From Adineta vaga (Eukaryota > Animalia > Rotifera), in the NCBI GenBank assembly GCA_021613535.1, contig CP075492.1, positions 14,136,001 through 14,200,000 on the forward strand: a stretch of 64,000 nt of DNA. The letters are read 5' to 3'. Positions 6,301 through 19,446 of this stretch are shown here, in pieces (position 1 is the first letter of the stretch; each line of letters begins with the position of its first letter). A model generated the notes under the pieces. It saw only the letters and a list, made by a program, of their open reading frames with translations. It ran no database searches and was not told where the DNA came from. The position numbers and the translations under genes are program-made.

Positions 6301-8816
6301 AGTGGGAAGGAGAGTTGAATTTCGGAGTGGTGGTAGATGTTCAGTTGTTGTGTGATAGAGGATGATGTGATTGAATGTTGATGTTGGTATGGAAGTGGGA
6401 AAGAGAGTTGAATAGAAGAATTATGAGAGATGTTCAGTTGTTGTGTGATAGAGGATGATGTGATTGAATGTTGATGTTGGTATGGAAGTGGGAAAGAGAG
6501 TTGAATAGAAGAATTATGAGAGATGTTCAGTTGTTGTGTGATAGAGGATGATGTGATTGAATGTTTATGTTGGTATGGAAGTGGGAAGGAGAGTTGAATT
6601 TCGGAGTGGTGGTAGATGTTCAGTTGTTGTGTGATAGAGGATGATGTGATTGAATGTTGATGTTGGTATGGAAGTGGGAAAGAGAGTTGAATAGAAGAAT
6701 GATGAGAGATGTTCAGTTGTTGTGTGATAGAGGATGATGTGATTGAATGTTGATGTTGGTATGGAAGTGGGAAGGAGAGTTGAATAGAAGAATGATGAGA
6801 GATGTTCAGTTGTTGTGTGATAGAGGATGATGTGATTGAATGTTTATGTTGGTATGGAAGTGGGAAAGAGAGTTGAATAGAAGAATTATGAGAGATGTTC
6901 AGTTGTTGTGTGATAGAGGATGATGTGATTGAATGTTGATGTTGGTATGGAAGTGGGAAAGAGAGTTGAATAGAAGAATGATGAGAGATGTTCAGTTGTT
7001 GTGTGATAGAGGATGATGTGATTGAATGTTGATGTTGGTATGGAAGTGGGAAAGGGAGTTGAATAGTCGATTCGTGGTAGATGTTCAGTTGTTGTGTGAT
7101 AGAGGATGATGTGATTGAATGTTGATGTTGGTATGGAAGTGGGAAGGAGAGTTGAATTTCGGAGTGGTGGTAGATGTTCAGTTGTTGTGTGATAGAGGAT
7201 GATGTGATTGAATGTTGATGTTGGTATGGAAGTGGGAAGGAGAGTTGAATAGAAGAATGATGAGAGATGTTCAGTTGTTGTGTGATAGAGGATGATGTGA
7301 TTGAATGTTGATGTTGGTATGGAAGTGGGAAAGAGAGTTGAATAGTGGAGTCTTGAGAGATGTTCAGTTGTTGTGTGATAGAGGATGATGTGATTGAATG
7401 TTGATGTTGGTATGGAAGTGGGAAAGAGAGTTGAATTTCGGAGTGGTGGTAGATGTTCAGTTGTTGTGTGATAGAGGATGATGTGATTGAATGTTGATGT
7501 TGGTATGGAAGTGGGAAAGAGAGTTGAATAGAAGAATTATGAGAGATGTTCAGTTGTTGTGTGATAGAGGATGATGTGATTGAATGTTGATGTTGGTATG
7601 GAAGTGGGAAGGAGAGTTGAATTTCGGAGTGGTGGTAGATGTTCAGTTGTTGTGTGATAGAGGATGATGTGATTGAATGTTTATGTTGGTATGGAAGTGG
7701 GAAGGAGAGTTGAATTTCGGAGTAGTGGTAGATGTTCAGTTGTTGTGTGATAGAGGATGATGTGATTGAATGTTGATGTTGGTATGGAAGTGGGAAGGAG
7801 AGTTGAATTTCGGAGTGGTGGTAGATGTTCAGTTGTTGTGTGATAGAGGATGATGTGATTGAATGTTGATGTTGGTATGGAAGTGGGAAAGAGAGTTGAA
7901 TAGAAGAATTATGAGAGATGTTCAGTTGTTGTGTGATAGAGGATGATGTGATTGAATGTTGATGTTGGTATGGAAGTGGGAAAGAGAGTTGAATAGAAGA
8001 ATTATGAGAGATGTTCAGTTGTTGTGTGATAGAGGATGATGTGATTGAATGTTTATGTTGGTATGGAAGTGGGAAGGAGAGTTGAATTTCGGAGTGGTGG
8101 TAGATGTTCAGTTGTTGTGTGATAGAGGATGATGTGATTGAATGTTGATGTTGGTATGGAAGTGGGAAAGAGAGTTGAATTTAGGAGTCTTGATAGATGT
8201 TCAGTTGTTGTGTGATAGAGGATGATGTGATTGAATGTTGATGTTGGTATGGAAGTGGGAAAGAGAGTTGAATTTAGGAGTCTTGAGAGATGTTCAGTTG
8301 TTGTGTGATAGAGGATGATGTGATTGAATGTTTATGTTGGTATGGAAGTGGGAAGGAGAGTTGAATTTCGGAGTGGTGGTAGATGTTCAGTTGTTGTGTG
8401 ATAGAGGATGATGTGATTGAATGTTGATGTTGGTATGGAAGTGGGAAAGAGAGTTGAATAGTCGATTCGTGCTAGATGTTCAGTTGTTGTGTGATAGAGG
8501 ATGATGTGATTGAATGTTGATGTTGGTATGGAAGTGTGAAAGAGAGTTGAATTTAGGAGTCTTGATAGATGTTCAGTTGTTGTGTGATAGAGGATGATGT
8601 GATTGAATGTTGATGTTGGTATGGAAGTGGGAAAGAGAGTTGAATTTAGGAGTCTTGAGAGATGTTCAGTTGTTGTGTGATAGAGGATGATGTGATTGAA
8701 TGTTGATGTTGGTATGGAAGTGGGAAAGAGAGTTGAATTTAGGAGTGGTGGTAGATGTTCAGTTGTTGTGTGATAGAGGATGATGTGATTGAATGTTGAT
8801 GTTGGTATGGAAGTGG
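3366..8816. repeat. Tandem array of 93-bp units (about 58.6 copies) with a 14-nt hypervariable cassette in each unit
   Basis: Constant part is agatgttcagttgttgtgtgatagaggatgatgtgattgaatgttgatgttggtatggaagtgggaa(a/g)gagagttgaat, followed by a 14-nt variable segment. Period is 93 bp (gttcag at 3458 and 3551). The + strand is G/T-rich and almost free of C. Confidence 0.98.
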
Positions 8817-8957
8817 CAGCCAAAGATGGATTACATCCTCATGTATGCCTATGCGAGATGCATTAACTTGTTCAATGAACATTCTGCGACTGAGGATAAC
8901 ACTCTTTGTAAATCGATTCGTTGGATGATAATTTAATATTCTTAAAATAAAAAATGA

Positions 8958-10399: not shown

Positions 10400-11961
10400 G
10401 TATGTCTGAATAAGAAAAGTACTTCTAGTTCGGTTCGTTCGATTGCATCGGATCGTCTTCTCTCGACCAAAGACTCGTTATCCTTCGGGAAGACCAGGGG
10501 CGTCCCGAGAGGGGGGCGCGTGGGGCGTAACGCCCCCCCCTGCTTCGGGAAAATTTTTGTTTTTTTTGCTCGCCAAAATTTTTTGCAGCAGAAAAAAAAA
10601 ATTTTTTCGGAAAATTTTCAAAAATTTTTCGCTGCGCCCCCCCTGCTTTTGGCACCTCGGGACGCCCCTGACGATTCGTATACTTGAACGAAGCCTTTTC
10701 AGATTCAAGATCATAGTAAATTTCAATCGTTTTCGCCACTGTATGATATTGACTATTCGATCTAGTGATAACAGCAATTGAGATAATGAAACCATTCTGC
10801 TTCAGTTTTTCTGCCATTTGTGTGCTTTTGTGACTGAAGAAGAATGGCTATAGCGACATCGATGAACATAATATTGAGTAATTATATACAACTAAATCGT
10901 TACATTAGCTATTGTTTCGTCCTCTCTCATCTTTGTTCCTGAAAAGTTGAGTAGAATCAATTTCTTTACCTAAATTTTGCTATACTGAACACTTTAGCAA
11001 TGACAGTCGTAATACAGTTGCTTTCGTTGAATCCATCACCTACCACCAGTTTTAACGTATGAATATAGCAGGGTATTCGTAAAAGTTCGCTGGTACTGAG
11101 CGATGTATCACACCAGTGACAAATCACATCTTTTTCGTTTCCACTTCCTATTTCATCATCATCTTGTTCGTCAACAGATTCACTTGAAGGTTCCTCAAAG
11201 TAAGTTTCGAAACCAGGCACAATAACAGTACCATACGCTTTGATATTGTACGATGTCGTGATCATTTCGTATTCTTTGAACAATTTTTCGACGGTATGGC
11301 TGCCTTAACAGAAACATTTGACAGAAAAGAGTTTTAAATAAGTACATGGTTTGATATGCATATCAGACAGATATTTGAATGCCAAAAAATGAGAATGAAA
11401 AATATTTTGATCTATCAAATGAATGGTGATATGGCATAGAAGGAACGCACTCTGCGATGAGTCCAAAGATCAAATCATGTGTTATCATTCTTGACAATTC
11501 GACTTGTCGTGGATGGTTACTTGAATATTTTGTTCCATCTTGAGGGCTTGTCATTGCTGTCTTGCTATCCGGTTGTTGAGATAGAATTTTCTCTTCTTTC
11601 AAAGCCAATATATTCGACCATCTCTTATATTCATCCATGTGATGGCGTTTAACGTGACGTACAAAATTGAAATATGAATCACCAGAGTTATTCACGGTAC
11701 CACTGCAGAGTAAGCACATAGCCGACTTGTGCCAAACAGGATGATCCAAGCTTTATCTTTTGCGTTGGAATCTGCCACGATTGTTGGGCTCACAAGAACG
11801 GCAGGATCGTCATCAATTGTAATCGTTGCAGCATCATAAGATTTATCAGGATCAGAAGCCATTTTAAATGAAAGACAAATAGCACAGCTTCTCAGAAATC
11901 GTCCGTATGCAATATAGCAAGCAAAGTTTGTTTGTGTACAGCTCGTTGTGCTTGCTAACAA
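10400..11961 (-). mobile_element. Decayed hAT-superfamily transposase remnant (boundaries approximate)
   Basis: BED zinc finger (CLLC...NFVRHVKRHH) in ORF 11363-11749 and hAT CxxH motif (RIPCYIHTLKLVV) in ORF 10966-11283. The frame is broken across several ORFs. Confidence 0.75.
10495..10670. mobile_element. 176-bp MITE with 15-bp perfect terminal inverted repeats
   Basis: caggggcgtcccgag ... ctcgggacgcccctg, with GC-rich arms and A/T tracts inside. Flanked by AC on both sides; no 8-bp target-site duplication. Confidence 0.88.
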
Positions 11962-12092: not shown

Positions 12093-15000
12093 TTAGCTAT
12101 TAATCGGATCGTTGCTAAGAAGCAGATGTTGAATAAACATATCCCATGATGAATCGTTGAGTTCTAATTGTTTACAATAGATACCATGACGTTGGCTGGT
12201 ATGCTGATAGAAATCAATCGCTTTGTATATCTGTTCGTTCATATTAGTAGATGAATTCTTGCAAATATAGTCCTAAATGGTATTGAGAAATTTAAAGGAA
12301 AATCAAAGAAGATTTAATTTACTTTAATTTGTTCGATATTAAATGGAAATTCAAATGTATCATGATGTAAAATTTGCATTTGAAGAACGAGCCATAAGAG
12401 GATAACACCTGTACCAATCAAACGAAGAATTTCATTTTGTAAATTTAATGCTAATAAAATGATAGTTCATATTTCTTTATAGTTTATATTGATAGTACGC
12501 AGTCGCTTACCGAGTGATTTTAAACCATGTTCGTTTAAATAATACTCAAGATTATGAAAAATAGTCTGATCAAGGTGAAACACATCAGCTAACTCTTTAT
12601 TTAATAGAAATGATCCATTCTATATTCGAATATTAAGAACATGTAACAAATAAATAATGAAATTTCGAAGAATTCTTACTTCAGATTGAAGTTTTAGTAG
12701 TTCATTCATCATTATTGGTGTCGATTGAATATCTTTCAATTGTCGGAGAAATGAAATATCAGTTGTCTTTTCTAAATGCAAATGCTATAACAATGTATAA
12801 CAATGACAAGAGATAAATTACTAGAGAAATTCTGTATTATAGTCTGAACATGACCAGCAAGCTGCGATAAAAGATTTCAAGATATAGTACAAAATCAAAT
12901 TAGAATACGAACTTGATACAAAGGATCATCTGATTTGCGAGCATAAACTATATAAAGAAAACAAGAATTAAATATTATTTATATTGGTTTAAAACTGACC
13001 CGATTTAGCTACAGCATTGGCTTGACTTTCAACGTATGCAATATGTTGTTCAATCCAGTCTTTTGTTGATCCTAGATAATATAAATAATATTCTATCTAT
13101 AGGTAAATCGCTGTCGAACTTTGATGATTAGAATCAACAGTATATGAAACTTTGGCACCTGAACGTGCTTCTTCAGCATCAACATGAAGTATACCATTTG
13201 CATCAATATTCATGCGAACAGCTATTTCAAGTGTTTGAGCAGCAAAGTTGTTTGTTAAACCAGAAAGATTGAACTCTCCCAGAAACATCTACGATGAAAC
13301 AAGATCATTTAAATCATATTTTAAACTGATTGAAATATGACGTACATTGTATTTTGTCAGAGTATGTTCACCTTCAAAAATGCGAATGGTAGCTGTTGTT
13401 TGATAAGCATATGCATTTGTAAATATTGACCAAAGTTCAGTACGAACTGGAATAGTTGTATTGCGACGAATAAGTGTATGCATATGACCATGAATATCTT
13501 CAATGCCCAATCCAAGTGGACAAACATCGAGAAGTAATAAGTCACAGATAGGAGTAATGCATGCTGCATCATTCTTTTTTCTTAATCCAAAGTAAAATAT
13601 TATCGATGAGAAATAGTGGTTCTTGTGAAACTTTGTAATACTTACAGTTTTTCTTGTCTACATTCATCTCCATCGAGAAGTGGTTTATTCGTAGGTACTG
13701 ATCTACACTTACTGATCTTTAACTTTGGTTCTAATGCAATCGATGGCCCCATACAGCCACTACTCATTTGCTGTGTATTCGATGCTGCCTCTTCTGCTAA
13801 TGATATTGTTCGATATGCTCTTTCTGGTGATAGTAGTCTGGCAGGTGAATTAGAATACAGACAGTTAGTATTAAGGTTGTCCATACGATTGAATGTTGTT
13901 TCATATTGTGGTACTCCTCCGGATAGCTCCTCCTCTATGCTTGACATCGGAGAAACGGATGCTGGTTGATTTTGAAGCAACTGAGATGAAAGTTCAAGAG
14001 TATCTGTGAGAGTGAGACGAGACGATTCACCATTTTCACCGCCAACACAATCATTTTTACAGGCTGAATCAGTTCGTTTTGATCGTAGTTCTGATAACCG
14101 GCTTGCTAAAAATAAAGATTGTTTACTGCTATATTTACATTTATGAAGATACTTTCATAAGTATGAATACAGAAACAAGTTCCGCACATCTCATGTTATC
14201 TTTAAATAGTATTACTAACTAAAGTCAATATAGGATGTTTCATCCATACAGTCTAAAAAGCCAAGATCGACATTATTCCAATCATCTGCTGTTTCTAATT
14301 CTTCTAGCACATGTTGCCATGGACAGTCTTCCTTTGTGAGTTCTTCCTCAATCTTGTCAAGATACATCATATTATCAGTAGTTGGAAGCTGTTTGTTACA
14401 TATTGTTGATGAACTTGCTGTTGCTGCTGCTGTTGATGGTTGAAGGAAGTCATTGGTATAATCAGGTACGTCATCTAGCTAATAAAGAAACAGTCTAAAT
14501 ATAGAGTATTGAATTAGGTACCGAAGTGCATAGTTTTCTTATCTCTTCTGTTTTTTCATTTATAAGTACTAAATTGTTCGCTTGACATTGTTGTTCTAAT
14601 GCTTGTCGTTCTTCTGCAGTTGCACCAGCCATTTCCGTTATTATATCTATTTTTTTCAAATTCATTATATATATATATGTGTGTGTGTGTGAATAGTCAT
14701 TTTATATACCGTCTCGCATTTTCTGTTCAAATTCATCTGCTTTATTGTATTCATTCAATGAATAGCGATATGTTCGTATAATACTCATCATTATGTCAAA
14801 TTTCACATCTTCACTTGCTCGATAAGAAATATCCTGACAGATTTTTTCAATATCATGAATAACATCTTTTTTTCTTGCAATCGATGCACTTTCAAGTGCA
14901 ATACGTGCATCAATTAATTTCTGTTTAATTAATGATAAATTTGACACATCACCATCCCATCTCATATATGGAAATAAATCAACATCATGTTCAAGCATAA

Positions 15001-18000
15001 CATCAAGAAGACGAACACCTACAATAGATAGTACATCATTTTACTAATAACGCTGTGCACGAATATACCTGGTACAGATGTTTTTAAATCTGTTTTCATA
15101 TCACGTTCTTCAATAGCAACAAAACTTGTATATGCACTAACAACAGAATGTTTTATACTTAGGTCAATAAGATCTCGTTTATATTGAATTTTCATCAATT
15201 CATTTTCACTTTCGTCCAAATCGAATAATCCATTTTCATAATCATCAATAATCGTTCGAGCAGTTAAACAGTGTAAAATACGACCGGTAGTTGCTGTCAT
15301 TGAACTACTAAATACATTGGTCACAAATTCTTGTCCATCAATCAGTACTGACAATGTTGCTTTATGACAATTTCGTATAAATCGATAGACAGTAAGTCGC
15401 ATTCCATTGAATAATGATCGAATCATTTTCGGTGCTTGCATGTGAAATTTTTCTTGTTCATCTACATGACCATGCCAATCAATCGAAATACTTGTCACAC
15501 ATGGTTGTCGAACATAATCGAGAATATTCAATACTTTTGTTTTCCATTTCGATCGATAATTTGAATCGAATATTGTTGCTAGACCACCTCCACTTGCTCC
15601 ATTAGCTAACTGTTTTAAACAATGTTTATTCGCAACATTACCAATCGAACACGTAAATAGACGATCATAACGCATAGTGAGCTGTTGTTTCAGTAGAATA
15701 AGAATCGAATTGAGATCATTAATATGTCCATCAGATACGAGAATAAACTGACGAGCTACCTTCGATGGTAATAATGAATAACGATGAAGAACAGAGAATA
15801 GATCTGTATTTCCACGATGAATCAATGAATGCTGAAATACATGAAAAGAATAAGATATACTTCAATTTCAAAGTAGATTACAAACCAAAACAAAATGTTT
15901 AGCTCTATCAAGATTCTCTTTTGTAGTTGGTACGGATATTGGAAAACATTCATCATTATCTAAGTAGTTTAAATGAAAAGAATAGAAAACGATCCCTGTA
16001 TTCTACCTGATCCGAAAGTAATGAGATTAAAATATGTATTTTCATCATCGATTTTCATATTTGTTAAAAACAAATGAGTCAATTGTTTTGCCTGTTGTGA
16101 ATGATTTCCATCCATTGAATTCGATACATCAATAATGAAAATAATTTCAATTTGTTCATTTGTATTCATTAATGTTTCAAATCGTGGATAGAAAGTTAAC
16201 ATACATGCTTGAGAAGTGAAATAATCTGATGATAATGTTTCAATGGACATTCGAGGTAAATTAGGATTATGTAATGTGATTGAAAGAATGAAATCTCGAT
16301 CGAGTAAAACATTATCCACTAGTTCAATCATAGCAATACAATTTGTTAATTTTCGACGAAGACGATGCGTTGGTGAAAAAAGTTTTGTTATATTATATGG
16401 CATTCGAATGGATGTTTTAAAAGTAAATTCGACTTTTTCATTTATAATACCAAATGATCGTAAAATTGATTGATCTCTTGTTTCAATTGCTTGTTTTGAT
16501 TGCCATGATGTCATTTTAGCTGGAAGACGAAATATAATATCATCATTTTCAATTTCTAATTCAGCGACATAGGTTATTTTAATGATCACTTCATTATTTG
16601 CTGGCAGATTACCAACAGCTACACTGAAGACTTGTGCTTCTTCCTGATGCATTAAATACGCACCATGACCTTTTTCAATTGCTTCTCGATATTCTTGTTT
16701 AGCTTGTTCTTTTTCTTTTACAACTCCTTTGATTACTTTATTATTAATATGTGCTTCAAAACCACAAACCGTGGAATTTTCATCAAGTGGAAATACATAT
16801 TTAGCTTCGATTGGTACGGAACTTGTATTGTGATAGACTTGATACATAACAACCTTTGTTTAGGAAATAGAAATCGCGAATGTATTAACTTTGATAGAAG
16901 AATTAACTGTATATTACTTCAACTGTAGTATCAACAATTTGTGCACGAATATGAAATGATTTCAGTGGTACAAGTTTTCCTGATGATGGACATATTAAAC
17001 CATAATCTTGTTCAGCTACTTCAATAATTTCATCATCGATGGTCATGAGAACTTCGACTATATGACCTTACCGTCATAGGTTTATTTCTAATCAAGAAAG
17101 ACTTATTCTTACCATGTTCACTTAACTTCAATGTATATTGATCATGATGAGTTATTGATAAGCGTTCAAATTCATTATTTAGAACATCCTTCGGTAACCA
17201 TGATACTTCCACAATATAGAGTAGAAGTTGTTGATCCAGTCGATAGATTGCATATTCATTATCCTAGTTGAATAGCAATCACTTTTATTTTTGGAGTTTT
17301 CAAATTCGAAAAGATACTTACAATAAACATTGAATGATTCTCTTCAGTTCGTTTAATTCCATGAGTACTATGAAATCCATCGGCAGGTTTAGTAAGGGTT
17401 GGTGAAAATGAATAATATTTGGCAGATTCACCTAGTGCTACTCGACAAATGCATAATAACCGACGACCTGGTCGTACTGTGCTTGCTGTCGTATATTGGA
17501 GTGAAGTTGAAACGGAATCAGAAAAATATATTCCATAACCAAGACAACCAACATCCGTACGTGTGACACCTAATTCTTCAACTACCATTTTCGGCATCAC
17601 TAAACCGCTGAATATACAGCATACATTTACTACGTAAATATTTAAGAAATGCAATATAAATATATACTACCGTGAAAGAATTCCAAGAAAATTAGTATAT
17701 TTTGAACCATGGAATAATTGTTGTTGATGGGATAATGTGGTAGAAAAATTAAAAGTATCAGTCTGTTTAGCGACACTAAATATGTTATGAATAACGATCT
17801 GCTCACCACTTAGTATGAACAAATAAGTCTATATTATATTTATCAAGTTAAATTTCAAATATATTTTACCTGTCTGTTGATGATTCAATAAGTTTTACAA
17901 TATTCTTATATTCAGGTGTTGAACTAGATAATGTTTCAATGTAACATTTTAATGCTCGATATTTTGCTTCGATCGGTGCTTTCATATTCCAATTCGTCAG

Positions 18001-19446
18001 TTCATTGACTGTCAGCATATCTCGAAGCATCTTTGAATTGTACAGACGTTCTAGTAGAGCAAATCAAAAGAATATATCAATACATACTTGACATAAGTCT
18101 AATTTTTCAATCAATACTCGACGATTGTTGATGAGATCAATTTGATACTGTGATCGATGTGGTAAGAATGAATAGAAACGAGTTACAGCAGTAGGATCAT
18201 TGGTAGATTTCAATTCCAGTAGTGCAGCTTCAGCTTCAATGATCTATACAATAATTTTGGATATGAACTATATTTTATACGCATGTAGAACAATGAATGT
18301 GAATACCGTTTTAAGAGTGATGGATTCCAGTGATATACTCAACATTTTATTCAGATCACCAATGGATTCTAACCAAATTGATTCAATGAATTGACACACA
18401 TTTTCGTCAAGTATTTGTGCATCAAGACGATGAGTAAATAATGACTAAGTACAATAAGATCATTATTCAGTTATTGATTCAATATCATTTTGCTTACGCG
18501 TAATAATAATTTTGAACCTAATTTATTCGGTAATATGTCACGAATTCGTGTTATACGTGGCATTGTAGATATTCGATTATAGTAAGATGCAAATAATTGT
18601 TGTTGTTCATTCGGATCATTACCAAATGCATACTGTATTAAAACATTCTTATCGTGTTGCTGCACTCGTTCATCAACGATCTGTTTTTCATATCGAAATC
18701 GTATACGATAATCACTTGTCTTCGAATTGTAGTATTGTTCAGGAATAATTTGAAGTTCGAGAGCAAAGAAAACAGTTGAACTATCATTCGTTTCCTATAT
18801 TATGAACAATAAAACTTGTAGAAATTCGAACATAAGTATGTACTTTGAAAATTGCCCATTTACCAATCGTACAATGTGTTAATTCATCAAAATGAGGTAA
18901 ATTTCTATCGTCTGCATTCCATAGTTTGATCTTATTTAAATCGAGTTTAATGATTTTAGTCGCATTTGCTCGAGATTCTATATCGATTAAGAAAATATAA
19001 AACCAATGCAAATAAAAAATACAATACAGTACCTGTAAGAGTAATTGTGCCAGTCTTAGTAAAATTGTCTTGATCTTCAACTGATTTGATACTAAATTTA
19101 TTAATATCGATCGATATTTGATCAGACGATAGGCAACGACATTGATACACATATTCAACATCGATTACTGGTATACCAAGCTTTTTAGCACGACGTATTT
19201 TATAACTATCCACATTGTTTGTAGTTAAAACATAATCAGTCTTAAAGAAAATTTAAACTATGTGTTTACGGACGAGAAGAGATAGAAGGAAAACAAACAT
19301 ACACTAGCGGTAAGAATATATGAGATCTGTGCGTGTTGTTCTCGTAGATAATTGATCAAGTCTTTTTTAGCTTTGAAGCTTTTTTCATGACCAAGTTCCA
19401 ATACAATAGTTTTTCCGTTGAATGGCGATATACGTGAAGAAGTCAT
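12093..19446 (-). CDS. PARP4: PARP4/vault-PARP-like multi-exon gene: BRCT, WGR-like region, PARP catalytic, VIT, vWA, linker, HSP70 substrate-binding-like domain, PARP4-type C-terminal domain
   Basis: BRCT-like N-terminus (FNGKTIVL...AKKLGIPVIDVEYV). PARP H-Y-E motifs LFHGS, LGYGIYFSD and DNEYAIY. VIT (IEAKYVFPLDENSTVCGFEA) and vWA MIDAS motif DVSNSM. C-terminal LLKLQSE|NGSFLL and YCKQLELNDSSWD. The GT-AG junctions I checked by hand between 13645 and 12093 are in frame. Confidence 0.88.

Follow-up and report, generated by a model that had tools for sequence, protein, structure and literature searches.

The 64,000-nucleotide window analysed here, positions 14,136,001 to 14,200,000 of contig CP075492.1 of the bdelloid rotifer Adineta vaga, carries on its minus strand an intact, transcribed member of the PARP4 family (vault PARP, PARP clade 5) in which the substrate-binding domain (SBD) of an Hsp70 chaperone stands directly before the vault-docking domain. 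The domain order of the encoded protein is BRCT, a PARP4-type catalytic domain with the H-Y-E triad, VIT, vWA, a long linker, the SBD and the C-terminal MVP-interaction domain. The NCBI model of the gene is I4U23_015385 (protein P0174, 1868 aa), whose tblastn match to the window spans 19446..12096 on the minus strand and whose residues 1526-1603 are 100% identical to SBD exon 1. Exons were searched singly, and the public P0174 model was used for whole-protein work. The gene is composed as follows, in the direction of transcription:

12093..19446, minus strand: the PARP4-like coding region as a whole (tblastn of P0174)
18956..19446, minus strand: N-terminal BRCT exons (Pfam BRCT; P0174 1-162 maps to 19446..18844)
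17111..17822, minus strand: ADP-ribosyltransferase exons with the H-Y-E triad (Pfam PARP; match to 8sx1)
16007..16856, minus strand: VIT and the start of vWA with the MIDAS motif DxSxS, in one exon (Pfam VIT, E 9e-33, and VWA; RNA contig piece 16007-16851)
15069..15959, minus strand: rest of vWA and an ITIH-like region, exons 15959-15886 and 15831-15069 (sequence reading; Pfam VWA at P0174 848-999)
13647..15018, minus strand: four linker exons, 15018-14710, 14646-14522, 14478-14220 and 14105-13647 (RNA joints)
13581..13645, minus strand: phase-2 GT..AG intron before the SBD (sequence; spliced out in contigs of runs X1, X3 and X9)
13346..13580, minus strand: SBD exon 1, with the interdomain linker DLLLLDV, strands beta1-beta4 and the cleft loops L1,2 and L3,4
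13120..13288, minus strand: SBD exon 2, strands beta5-beta8 (Pfam HSP70; RNA joints 13288/13346 and 13070/13119)
13000..13071, minus strand: SBD exon 3, helix A alone, lid helices B-E being absent
12822..12947, minus strand: two micro-exons leading from the SBD to the MVP-interaction domain, 12947-12913 and 12861-12822 (RNA joints)
12093..12771, minus strand: four exons of the helical MVP-interaction domain (MINT, or MVP-ID) with the stop codon, 12771-12680, 12619-12511, 12450-12323 and 12272-12093

The N-terminal BRCT domain that marks animal PARP4 is found at P0174 7-82 (Pfam, E 4.5e-5), the catalytic domain at 352-513, and the succession of VIT and vWA typical of PARP4 at 597-707 (E 1.8e-38) and 848-999 (VWA_3/VWA). 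The best match of the catalytic domain in the PDB is human PARP4 (8sx1, E 6e-45), compared with E 9e-15 for PARP2, and the H, Y and E of the triad line up with those of 8sx1. Within the vWA region, an RNA contig has 74 nt between its pieces 16007-16851 and 15099-15831, which fits the vWA exon 15959-15886. The linker exons, joined at 15016/15067, 14646/14710, 14478/14522 and 14105/14220, gave no match in a Pfam search and become low in complexity toward their 3' end. The micro-exons are joined at 12947/13000, 12861/12913 and 12771/12822, and homologues hold the peptide 'LAGQTE..NF' as the counterpart of this stretch. At the C-terminus, P0174 1719-1862 resembles residues 1571-1705 of human PARP4 in vault cryo-EM entries (phmmer, E 3e-4), and PF26156 is present for this domain in precomputed Pfam lists. 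The A. vaga genome also holds Vault-repeat (MVP) genes at at least six loci.

The inserted module corresponds to a well-delimited part of Hsp70. Pfam HSP70 matches P0174 1536-1678 with profile positions 381-519 of 599; taken singly, SBD exon 1 (13579-13346) matches at E 2.8e-13 (profile 381-446) and SBD exon 2 (13288-13121) at E 1.8e-6 (profile 449-499), and the 23 aa of SBD exon 3 are too short for Pfam scoring. Aligned to BiP 385-516, the module comprises the interdomain linker DLLLLDV, the eight-strand SBD-beta sandwich and helix A. There is no ATPase (nucleotide-binding) domain (NBD), since the HSP70 match is confined to profile 381-519 and no MreB- or actin-like match occurs anywhere in P0174. 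Lid helices B-E and a C-terminal tail motif are likewise missing, the match ending in helix A by both Pfam and the AlphaFold2 (AF2) model. The best solved relatives are the SBDs of BiP, Hsc70 and DnaK (E ~1e-24 to 1e-21), with BiP marginally the best PDB match; a tree of the SBD with canonical Hsp70s, built on six usable canonical sequences and containing a long branch to the environmental sequence P0240, did not separate BiP from a cytosolic donor. In the HMMER alignment the pocket agrees with that of BiP at I, F, A and I and has A in place of V, and loop L1,2 reads EDIHGHM here versus ETVGGVM in BiP, loop L3,4 NAYAYQ versus ASDNQ. The AF2 model, computed for P0174 1520-1868 with 19 homologues in the alignment (mean pLDDT 76), shows in order eight strands, helix A (model residues 144-156), a disordered stretch beginning after model residue 168 and the all-helical MVP-interaction domain (pLDDT ~80-90). 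In Foldseek comparisons the SBD half superposes on Hsp70 SBDs, for example on 2op6 with a root-mean-square deviation (rmsd) of 2.0 A over 133 columns.

The SBD exons belong to the mature message of the gene. They are flanked by GT..AG introns of 48-65 nt, and Logan contigs from runs X1, X3 and X9 have lost every intron from 12322 to 16851. The joints lie at 13647|13581, 13346|13288, 13119|13070 and 13000|12947, with every further junction down to 12322, and read CT..AC on the plus strand, that is, GT..AG on the strand of the gene. One contig of 1069 nt runs from ~13824 to 12322 through the three SBD exons and six further junctions, and others cover 13896-15547 and 15521-16851 and beyond. Contigs of run X7 keep the introns, so that this run is taken as genomic DNA. 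The joint 13581/13647 is one base off the canonical splice sites. At 13646, the base that closes the exon preceding the SBD, the assembly reads T on the minus strand and the RNA-type contigs read G. The shift is best explained by this T>G change in the transcribed strain, which turns Leu into Arg and keeps the frame; it is probably a strain or allele difference. The NCBI model departs from the spliced contigs in this region: its donor near 13708, instead of 13646, loses ~20 residues, it omits the 40-nt exon 12861-12822 that is present in transcript contigs, and it begins the next exon at 12784 instead of 12771.

A sequence-only reading of this locus had described an Hsp70 linker, SBD-beta and helix A, devoid of ATPase domain and lid and spliced in frame behind a phase-2 intron (13581-13645) between the vWA/linker exons and the MVP-interaction part of a PARP4-like gene with a retained H-Y-E triad. 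The HSP70 profile range, the BiP alignment, the intron-free contigs, the GT..AG borders and the alignment with 8sx1 bear this description out, and the profile search and structure prediction that it had proposed returned HSP70 matches on exons and on P0174 and an AF2 fold that superposes on Hsp70 SBDs. Its junction 12980/12950 and its module start at 12980 were misplaced: both fall inside an intron, SBD exon 3 ending at 13000 and the next exon beginning at 12947.

Four PARP4-type SBD loci are found in the A. vaga genome, namely the window gene and those at C6:12.95 Mb, C6:13.30 Mb and C1:10.18 Mb. One of the paralogues has EF-hands as well as the SBD; the window gene has no EF-hands by Pfam. 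The ratio of nonsynonymous to synonymous substitution rates (dN/dS) in the two SBD-beta exons is 0.23-0.38 versus the two more distant paralogues and 0.44-0.64 versus the closest one, the upper value being that of SBD exon 2; divergence from this closest paralogue is small (dS ~0.08 for SBD exon 1). For the 22-codon helix-A exon the ratio is 0.50-0.62 versus the other paralogues. The flanking linker exon gives 0.87 versus the closest paralogue, and its similarity to the other two is undetectable. Among 27 distinct bdelloid copies, the best-conserved parts are the interdomain linker and the strands lining the cleft: identity to the window gene is 0.90 for the linker, 0.89 for the RNTTIP turn and 0.88 for beta3-L3,4-beta4, and falls to 0.45 in helix A and 0.18 directly upstream of the linker. 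Beyond the bdelloids, the DLLLLDV region is nearly invariant in rotifers, bivalves and environmental sequences, and in the RNTTIP turn R45 and P50 are invariant and N46 nearly so in all lineages. The SBD exons of the closest paralogue lie at C6:12946255-12946723, with a dS of only ~0.08-0.15; so low a divergence hints at a recent event linking chromosomes 3 and 6, either duplication or gene conversion.

The combination of PARP4 with an Hsp70 SBD is shared by several animal groups. An exhaustive HMMER search with SBD exon 1 ranked bdelloid proteins first and ordinary Hsp70s after them. The full BRCT-PARP-VIT-vWA-SBD-MINT order is present in A. vaga, A. ricciae, A. steineri, Didymodactylos carnosus, Rotaria sordida, R. 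socialis, R. magnacalcarata and Rotaria sp., and thus in every bdelloid genus sampled (Adineta, Rotaria, Didymodactylos). The order SBD then MINT recurs in the bivalves Dreissena polymorpha, Ostrea edulis and Crassostrea virginica (profile 380-526), where the SBD stands after ubiquitin, an N-terminal fragment of actin or a synaptobrevin piece, and in three environmental eukaryote sequences, P0240 on a transcriptome-like contig and P0216 and P0305 on AT-rich, intron-poor metagenome contigs; P0305 has a 14-3-3 fragment besides the SBD. The SBD coexists with other linker pieces in bivalves and in one environmental protein. When a profile built from PARP4-type SBDs was run on the named PARP4s then collected from vertebrates, echinoderms, cnidarians, annelids and nemerteans, no hidden SBD came to light, and the PARP4 of Brachionus calyciflorus contains ubiquitin and no SBD. 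Between vWA and the C-terminus, invertebrate PARP4s carry ubiquitin, pairs of EF-hands, WH2 and fragments of actin, 14-3-3 and synaptobrevin (P0354, P0365, P0377, P0227, P0231, P0327 and P0320, from bivalves, a hemichordate, a sponge and Brachionus). Several pieces are partial: the actin match covers profile 3-74 of 410 (the N-terminal 50-70 aa), that of 14-3-3 positions 125-220 of 223 (C-terminal) and that of synaptobrevin 19-61 of 89. In the core tree the environmental clade adjoins the bdelloids; neither kinship nor gene transfer was read from this placement, both groups standing on long branches. Nothing useful came from the ESM Atlas, whether searched by features or by fold.

A 666-aa gene of Rotaria sordida (CAJNOU010000422.1, L015:10001-14298) consists of a low-complexity N-terminus, the SBD and MINT, and no PARP, VIT or vWA coding sequence lies within 10 kb upstream of it. 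This upstream check speaks against reading this short SBD-MINT protein as a split gene model, and it may be real. Its composition links the SBD with vault anchoring and not with catalysis.

Some neighbouring features were recorded along the way. One of the AT-rich (26-38% GC), intron-poor metagenome contigs (L002:1574-6844) encodes a PARP4-like protein with an Hsp70 SBD, and beside it lies a 1369-aa protein with MJ1316, Exo_endo_phos, 2',5' RNA ligase and poly(A) polymerase domains. In the window itself, open reading frames (ORFs) lie directly downstream of the gene on the minus strand at 10966-11961; among them is a Cys/His-rich stretch resembling a BED-type zinc finger, perhaps from a transposase-derived gene, and at 8332-8823 there is an ORF of near-identical 31-aa (93-nt) repeats.

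We propose that the module acts as an ATP-independent peptide-binding or bait element held at the vault wall, a putative function to which we give about an even chance. A lidless, nucleotide-independent Hsp70 SBD would have been captured into the variable PARP4 linker, directly before the MVP-interaction domain, and the latter would anchor the protein to the inner vault wall. Placed beside this anchor, the SBD could serve as a permanently accessible clamp or bait, independent of ATP, for extended hydrophobic peptide segments, whether those of clients or the conserved LLLLDV linkers of neighbouring copies, and the bound proteins might thus be kept near the ADP-ribosyltransferase domain or inside the vault lumen. 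In the absence of both ATPase domain and lid, no chaperone cycle is possible. By analogy with lid-truncated DnaK, binding is expected to be fast-exchanging and of modest affinity. It is plausible, as the sequence-only reading had proposed, that unfolded or foreign peptides are bound in this manner and that stress is thereby linked to vaults. Proteins fused to MINT are known to be carried into vaults (PMC12280208). From the position of the SBD at the vault-docking domain, together with the captured pieces found elsewhere, it would seem that the linker determines which molecules PARP4 encounters at the vault or within it.

Several observations weigh against this proposal. Substitutions in the cleft loops (T>D, G>H and V>H in L1,2; SDN>YAY in L3,4) may give the module a specificity other than that of Hsp70. 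Among the human residues contacting MVP, S1614 is conserved, and K1618 and R1689, both important for MVP binding by human MINT (PMC12280208), are replaced here by N and Q, so that vault docking is deduced from the homology of the domain. The helix-A exon has a dN/dS of ~1.3 versus the closest paralogue. The identification of runs X1, X3 and X9 as RNA is a guess for which the removal of introns is the evidence, and no single contig extends from BRCT to MINT because the contigs break at heterozygous sites.

Among the other explanations, an integrated bait or decoy is possible, at a low level of confidence. The SBD would then be one of a set of hub-protein pieces displayed in PARP4 linkers, along with ubiquitin, the actin N-terminus, 14-3-3, synaptobrevin and calmodulin-like EF-hands, and any factor that targets these hubs, be it a pathogen effector, a toxin or a host regulator, would be trapped and then either ADP-ribosylated or confined to vaults. 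Partial rather than whole domains are found in the same vWA-MINT linker of bivalves, a hemichordate, a sponge, Brachionus and environmental eukaryotes, and the A. vaga paralogue combining EF-hands with the SBD fits the same picture. Rapid evolution of PARP genes is reportedly tied, in the title of one paper, to host-virus conflict, which we count in its favour. PARP4-like proteins with an appended 14-3-3 are also on record (PMC4245714). However, the SBD cleft is conserved within bdelloids and not fast-evolving, and the argument is drawn from domain lists only. Extended to eukaryotes at large, it can be hypothesised that PARP4 linkers are bait arrays (ubiquitin, actin, 14-3-3, synaptobrevin, calmodulin, Hsp70 SBD) and that vault PARP is a guard-type sensor, a generalisation that we consider doubtful. 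If it were true, attackers or binders of hubs, such as effectors, toxins and damaged proteins, would be ADP-ribosylated or enclosed in vaults, by a system that is multiplied in bdelloids and whose annotated members are radiation-induced.

It is unlikely, in our estimation, that the module is instead a self-association switch, in which an SBD would take up the LLLLDV linker, either of its own molecule or of a second one, as in BiP oligomers, and keep PARP4 clustered or auto-inhibited at the vault wall for as long as no unfolded client competes the linker away. In BiP, the SBD is known to engage the linker in trans. No segment of the SBD is better conserved than the linker (0.90), although there is no NBD for it to dock on, its near-invariance extends across rotifers, bivalves and environmental sequences, and the fold matches include the lid-truncated BiP oligomer 7a4u (rmsd 3.5 A, 42% identity); the AF2 monomer, on the other hand, leaves the linker undocked, with low confidence. 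Very improbable is a role as a docking site of the Hsp70 system, with the linker and SBD-beta bringing to the vaults a co-chaperone or the free NBD of an Hsp70 or Hsp110. In ATP-state Hsp70 the interface with the NBD involves the linker as well as the RNTTIP turn, and both are conserved across all lineages, but these residues have structural roles too, and we know of no trans docking of this kind. That the module is a functionless relic of exon shuffling or an artefact of gene models can hardly be credited and is largely refuted: bdelloid PARP4 linkers are highly variable, public gene models are often split or truncated and the ratios versus the closest paralogue are high in SBD exon 2 (0.64) and in the helix-A exon, but the exons are in frame within spliced contigs, the module is retained in Adineta, Rotaria, Didymodactylos and bivalves, and the dN/dS of the SBD-beta exons versus more distant paralogues (0.23-0.38) and the cleft conservation of 0.88 speak against it.

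Returning to the peptide-binding or bait module, its setting in the literature is sparse. A literature search found no paper joining PARP4 with bdelloids or with Hsp70, nor one discussing the layout, and to that extent the view of the sequence-only reading that the architecture is undescribed stands. That reading had named an architecture both widespread and described as grounds for refutation, and of these the first applies: the layout is conserved across bdelloids, recurs in bivalves and environmental eukaryotes and is already present in public protein sets, in the NCBI model of the gene and in UniRef entries named 'Poly [ADP-ribose] polymerase'. A. vaga genes annotated with PF00012, PF00644, PF08487 and vWA were listed by Moris et al. 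(2024; PMC10809525), the one source of expression data that turned up. For FUN_013713, one of these genes, the log2 fold change following desiccation plus X-rays is ~0.2 at 0 h and 4.5 at 2.5 h, and another, FUN_002086, is radiation-induced with a log2 fold change of 1.8 (PMC10809525); neither is assigned to the window locus, and following the PF00153 clue for FUN_013713, no mitochondrial-carrier gene was found adjoining any of the four A. vaga loci. Two tables of that study disagree on both genes, one calling them 'HSP' and the other PARP (PMC10809525, Tables S5 and S8). Their chimeric PARP4/Hsp70 nature had gone unremarked, and this annotation can now be corrected together with the two sites that the NCBI model mis-splices. 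More broadly, the function of vaults and of PARP4, their only enzyme, has been unsettled since the 1990s, and the SBD layout offers a testable lead.

Compared with vertebrate PARP4, the A. vaga protein shares the BRCT domain, the PARP1-like catalytic domain with H-Y-E, VIT, vWA, the long linker and the helical C-terminal MVP-interaction domain (PMC10450202, PMC12280208). The two differ in what precedes MINT: human PARP4 has only a disordered region there (Suskiewicz et al., 2023), and the absence of a chaperone module that the sequence-only reading had ascribed to canonical PARP4 holds for the vertebrate protein (PMC10450202), whereas the A. vaga gene has the Hsp70 SBD at this place. They also differ in number, with four loci per haploid genome in A. 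vaga and one gene in vertebrates. With the SBDs of BiP, Hsc70 and DnaK, and above all with their lid-truncated constructs, the module has in common the interdomain linker, the eight-strand beta-sandwich, helix A and the hydrophobic pocket residues. In contrast to Hsp70, it lacks the ATPase domain, lid helices B-E and an EEVD or KDEL tail; its loop L1,2 contains two His and its loop L3,4 the sequence Tyr-Ala-Tyr, and most bdelloid copies have a two-residue insertion before beta3. PARP4-like proteins with an appended 14-3-3 were described by Perina et al. (2014; PMC4245714), and these, like the PARP4s with ubiquitin, actin or EF-hands, also hold a foreign domain or fragment between vWA and the C-terminus; the insert here is an Hsp70 SBD, which PMC4245714 does not mention. 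Finally, the engineered MINT/INT fusions used for cargo loading of recombinant vaults place their module directly N-terminal of the MVP-interaction domain (PMC12280208), just as the A. vaga gene does. In the SBD-MINT gene of Rotaria sordida such a vault-loading fusion seems to occur naturally, and the A. vaga module differs from the engineered ones in being natural, conserved and part of an 1868-aa enzyme, whose packaging into vaults is putative.

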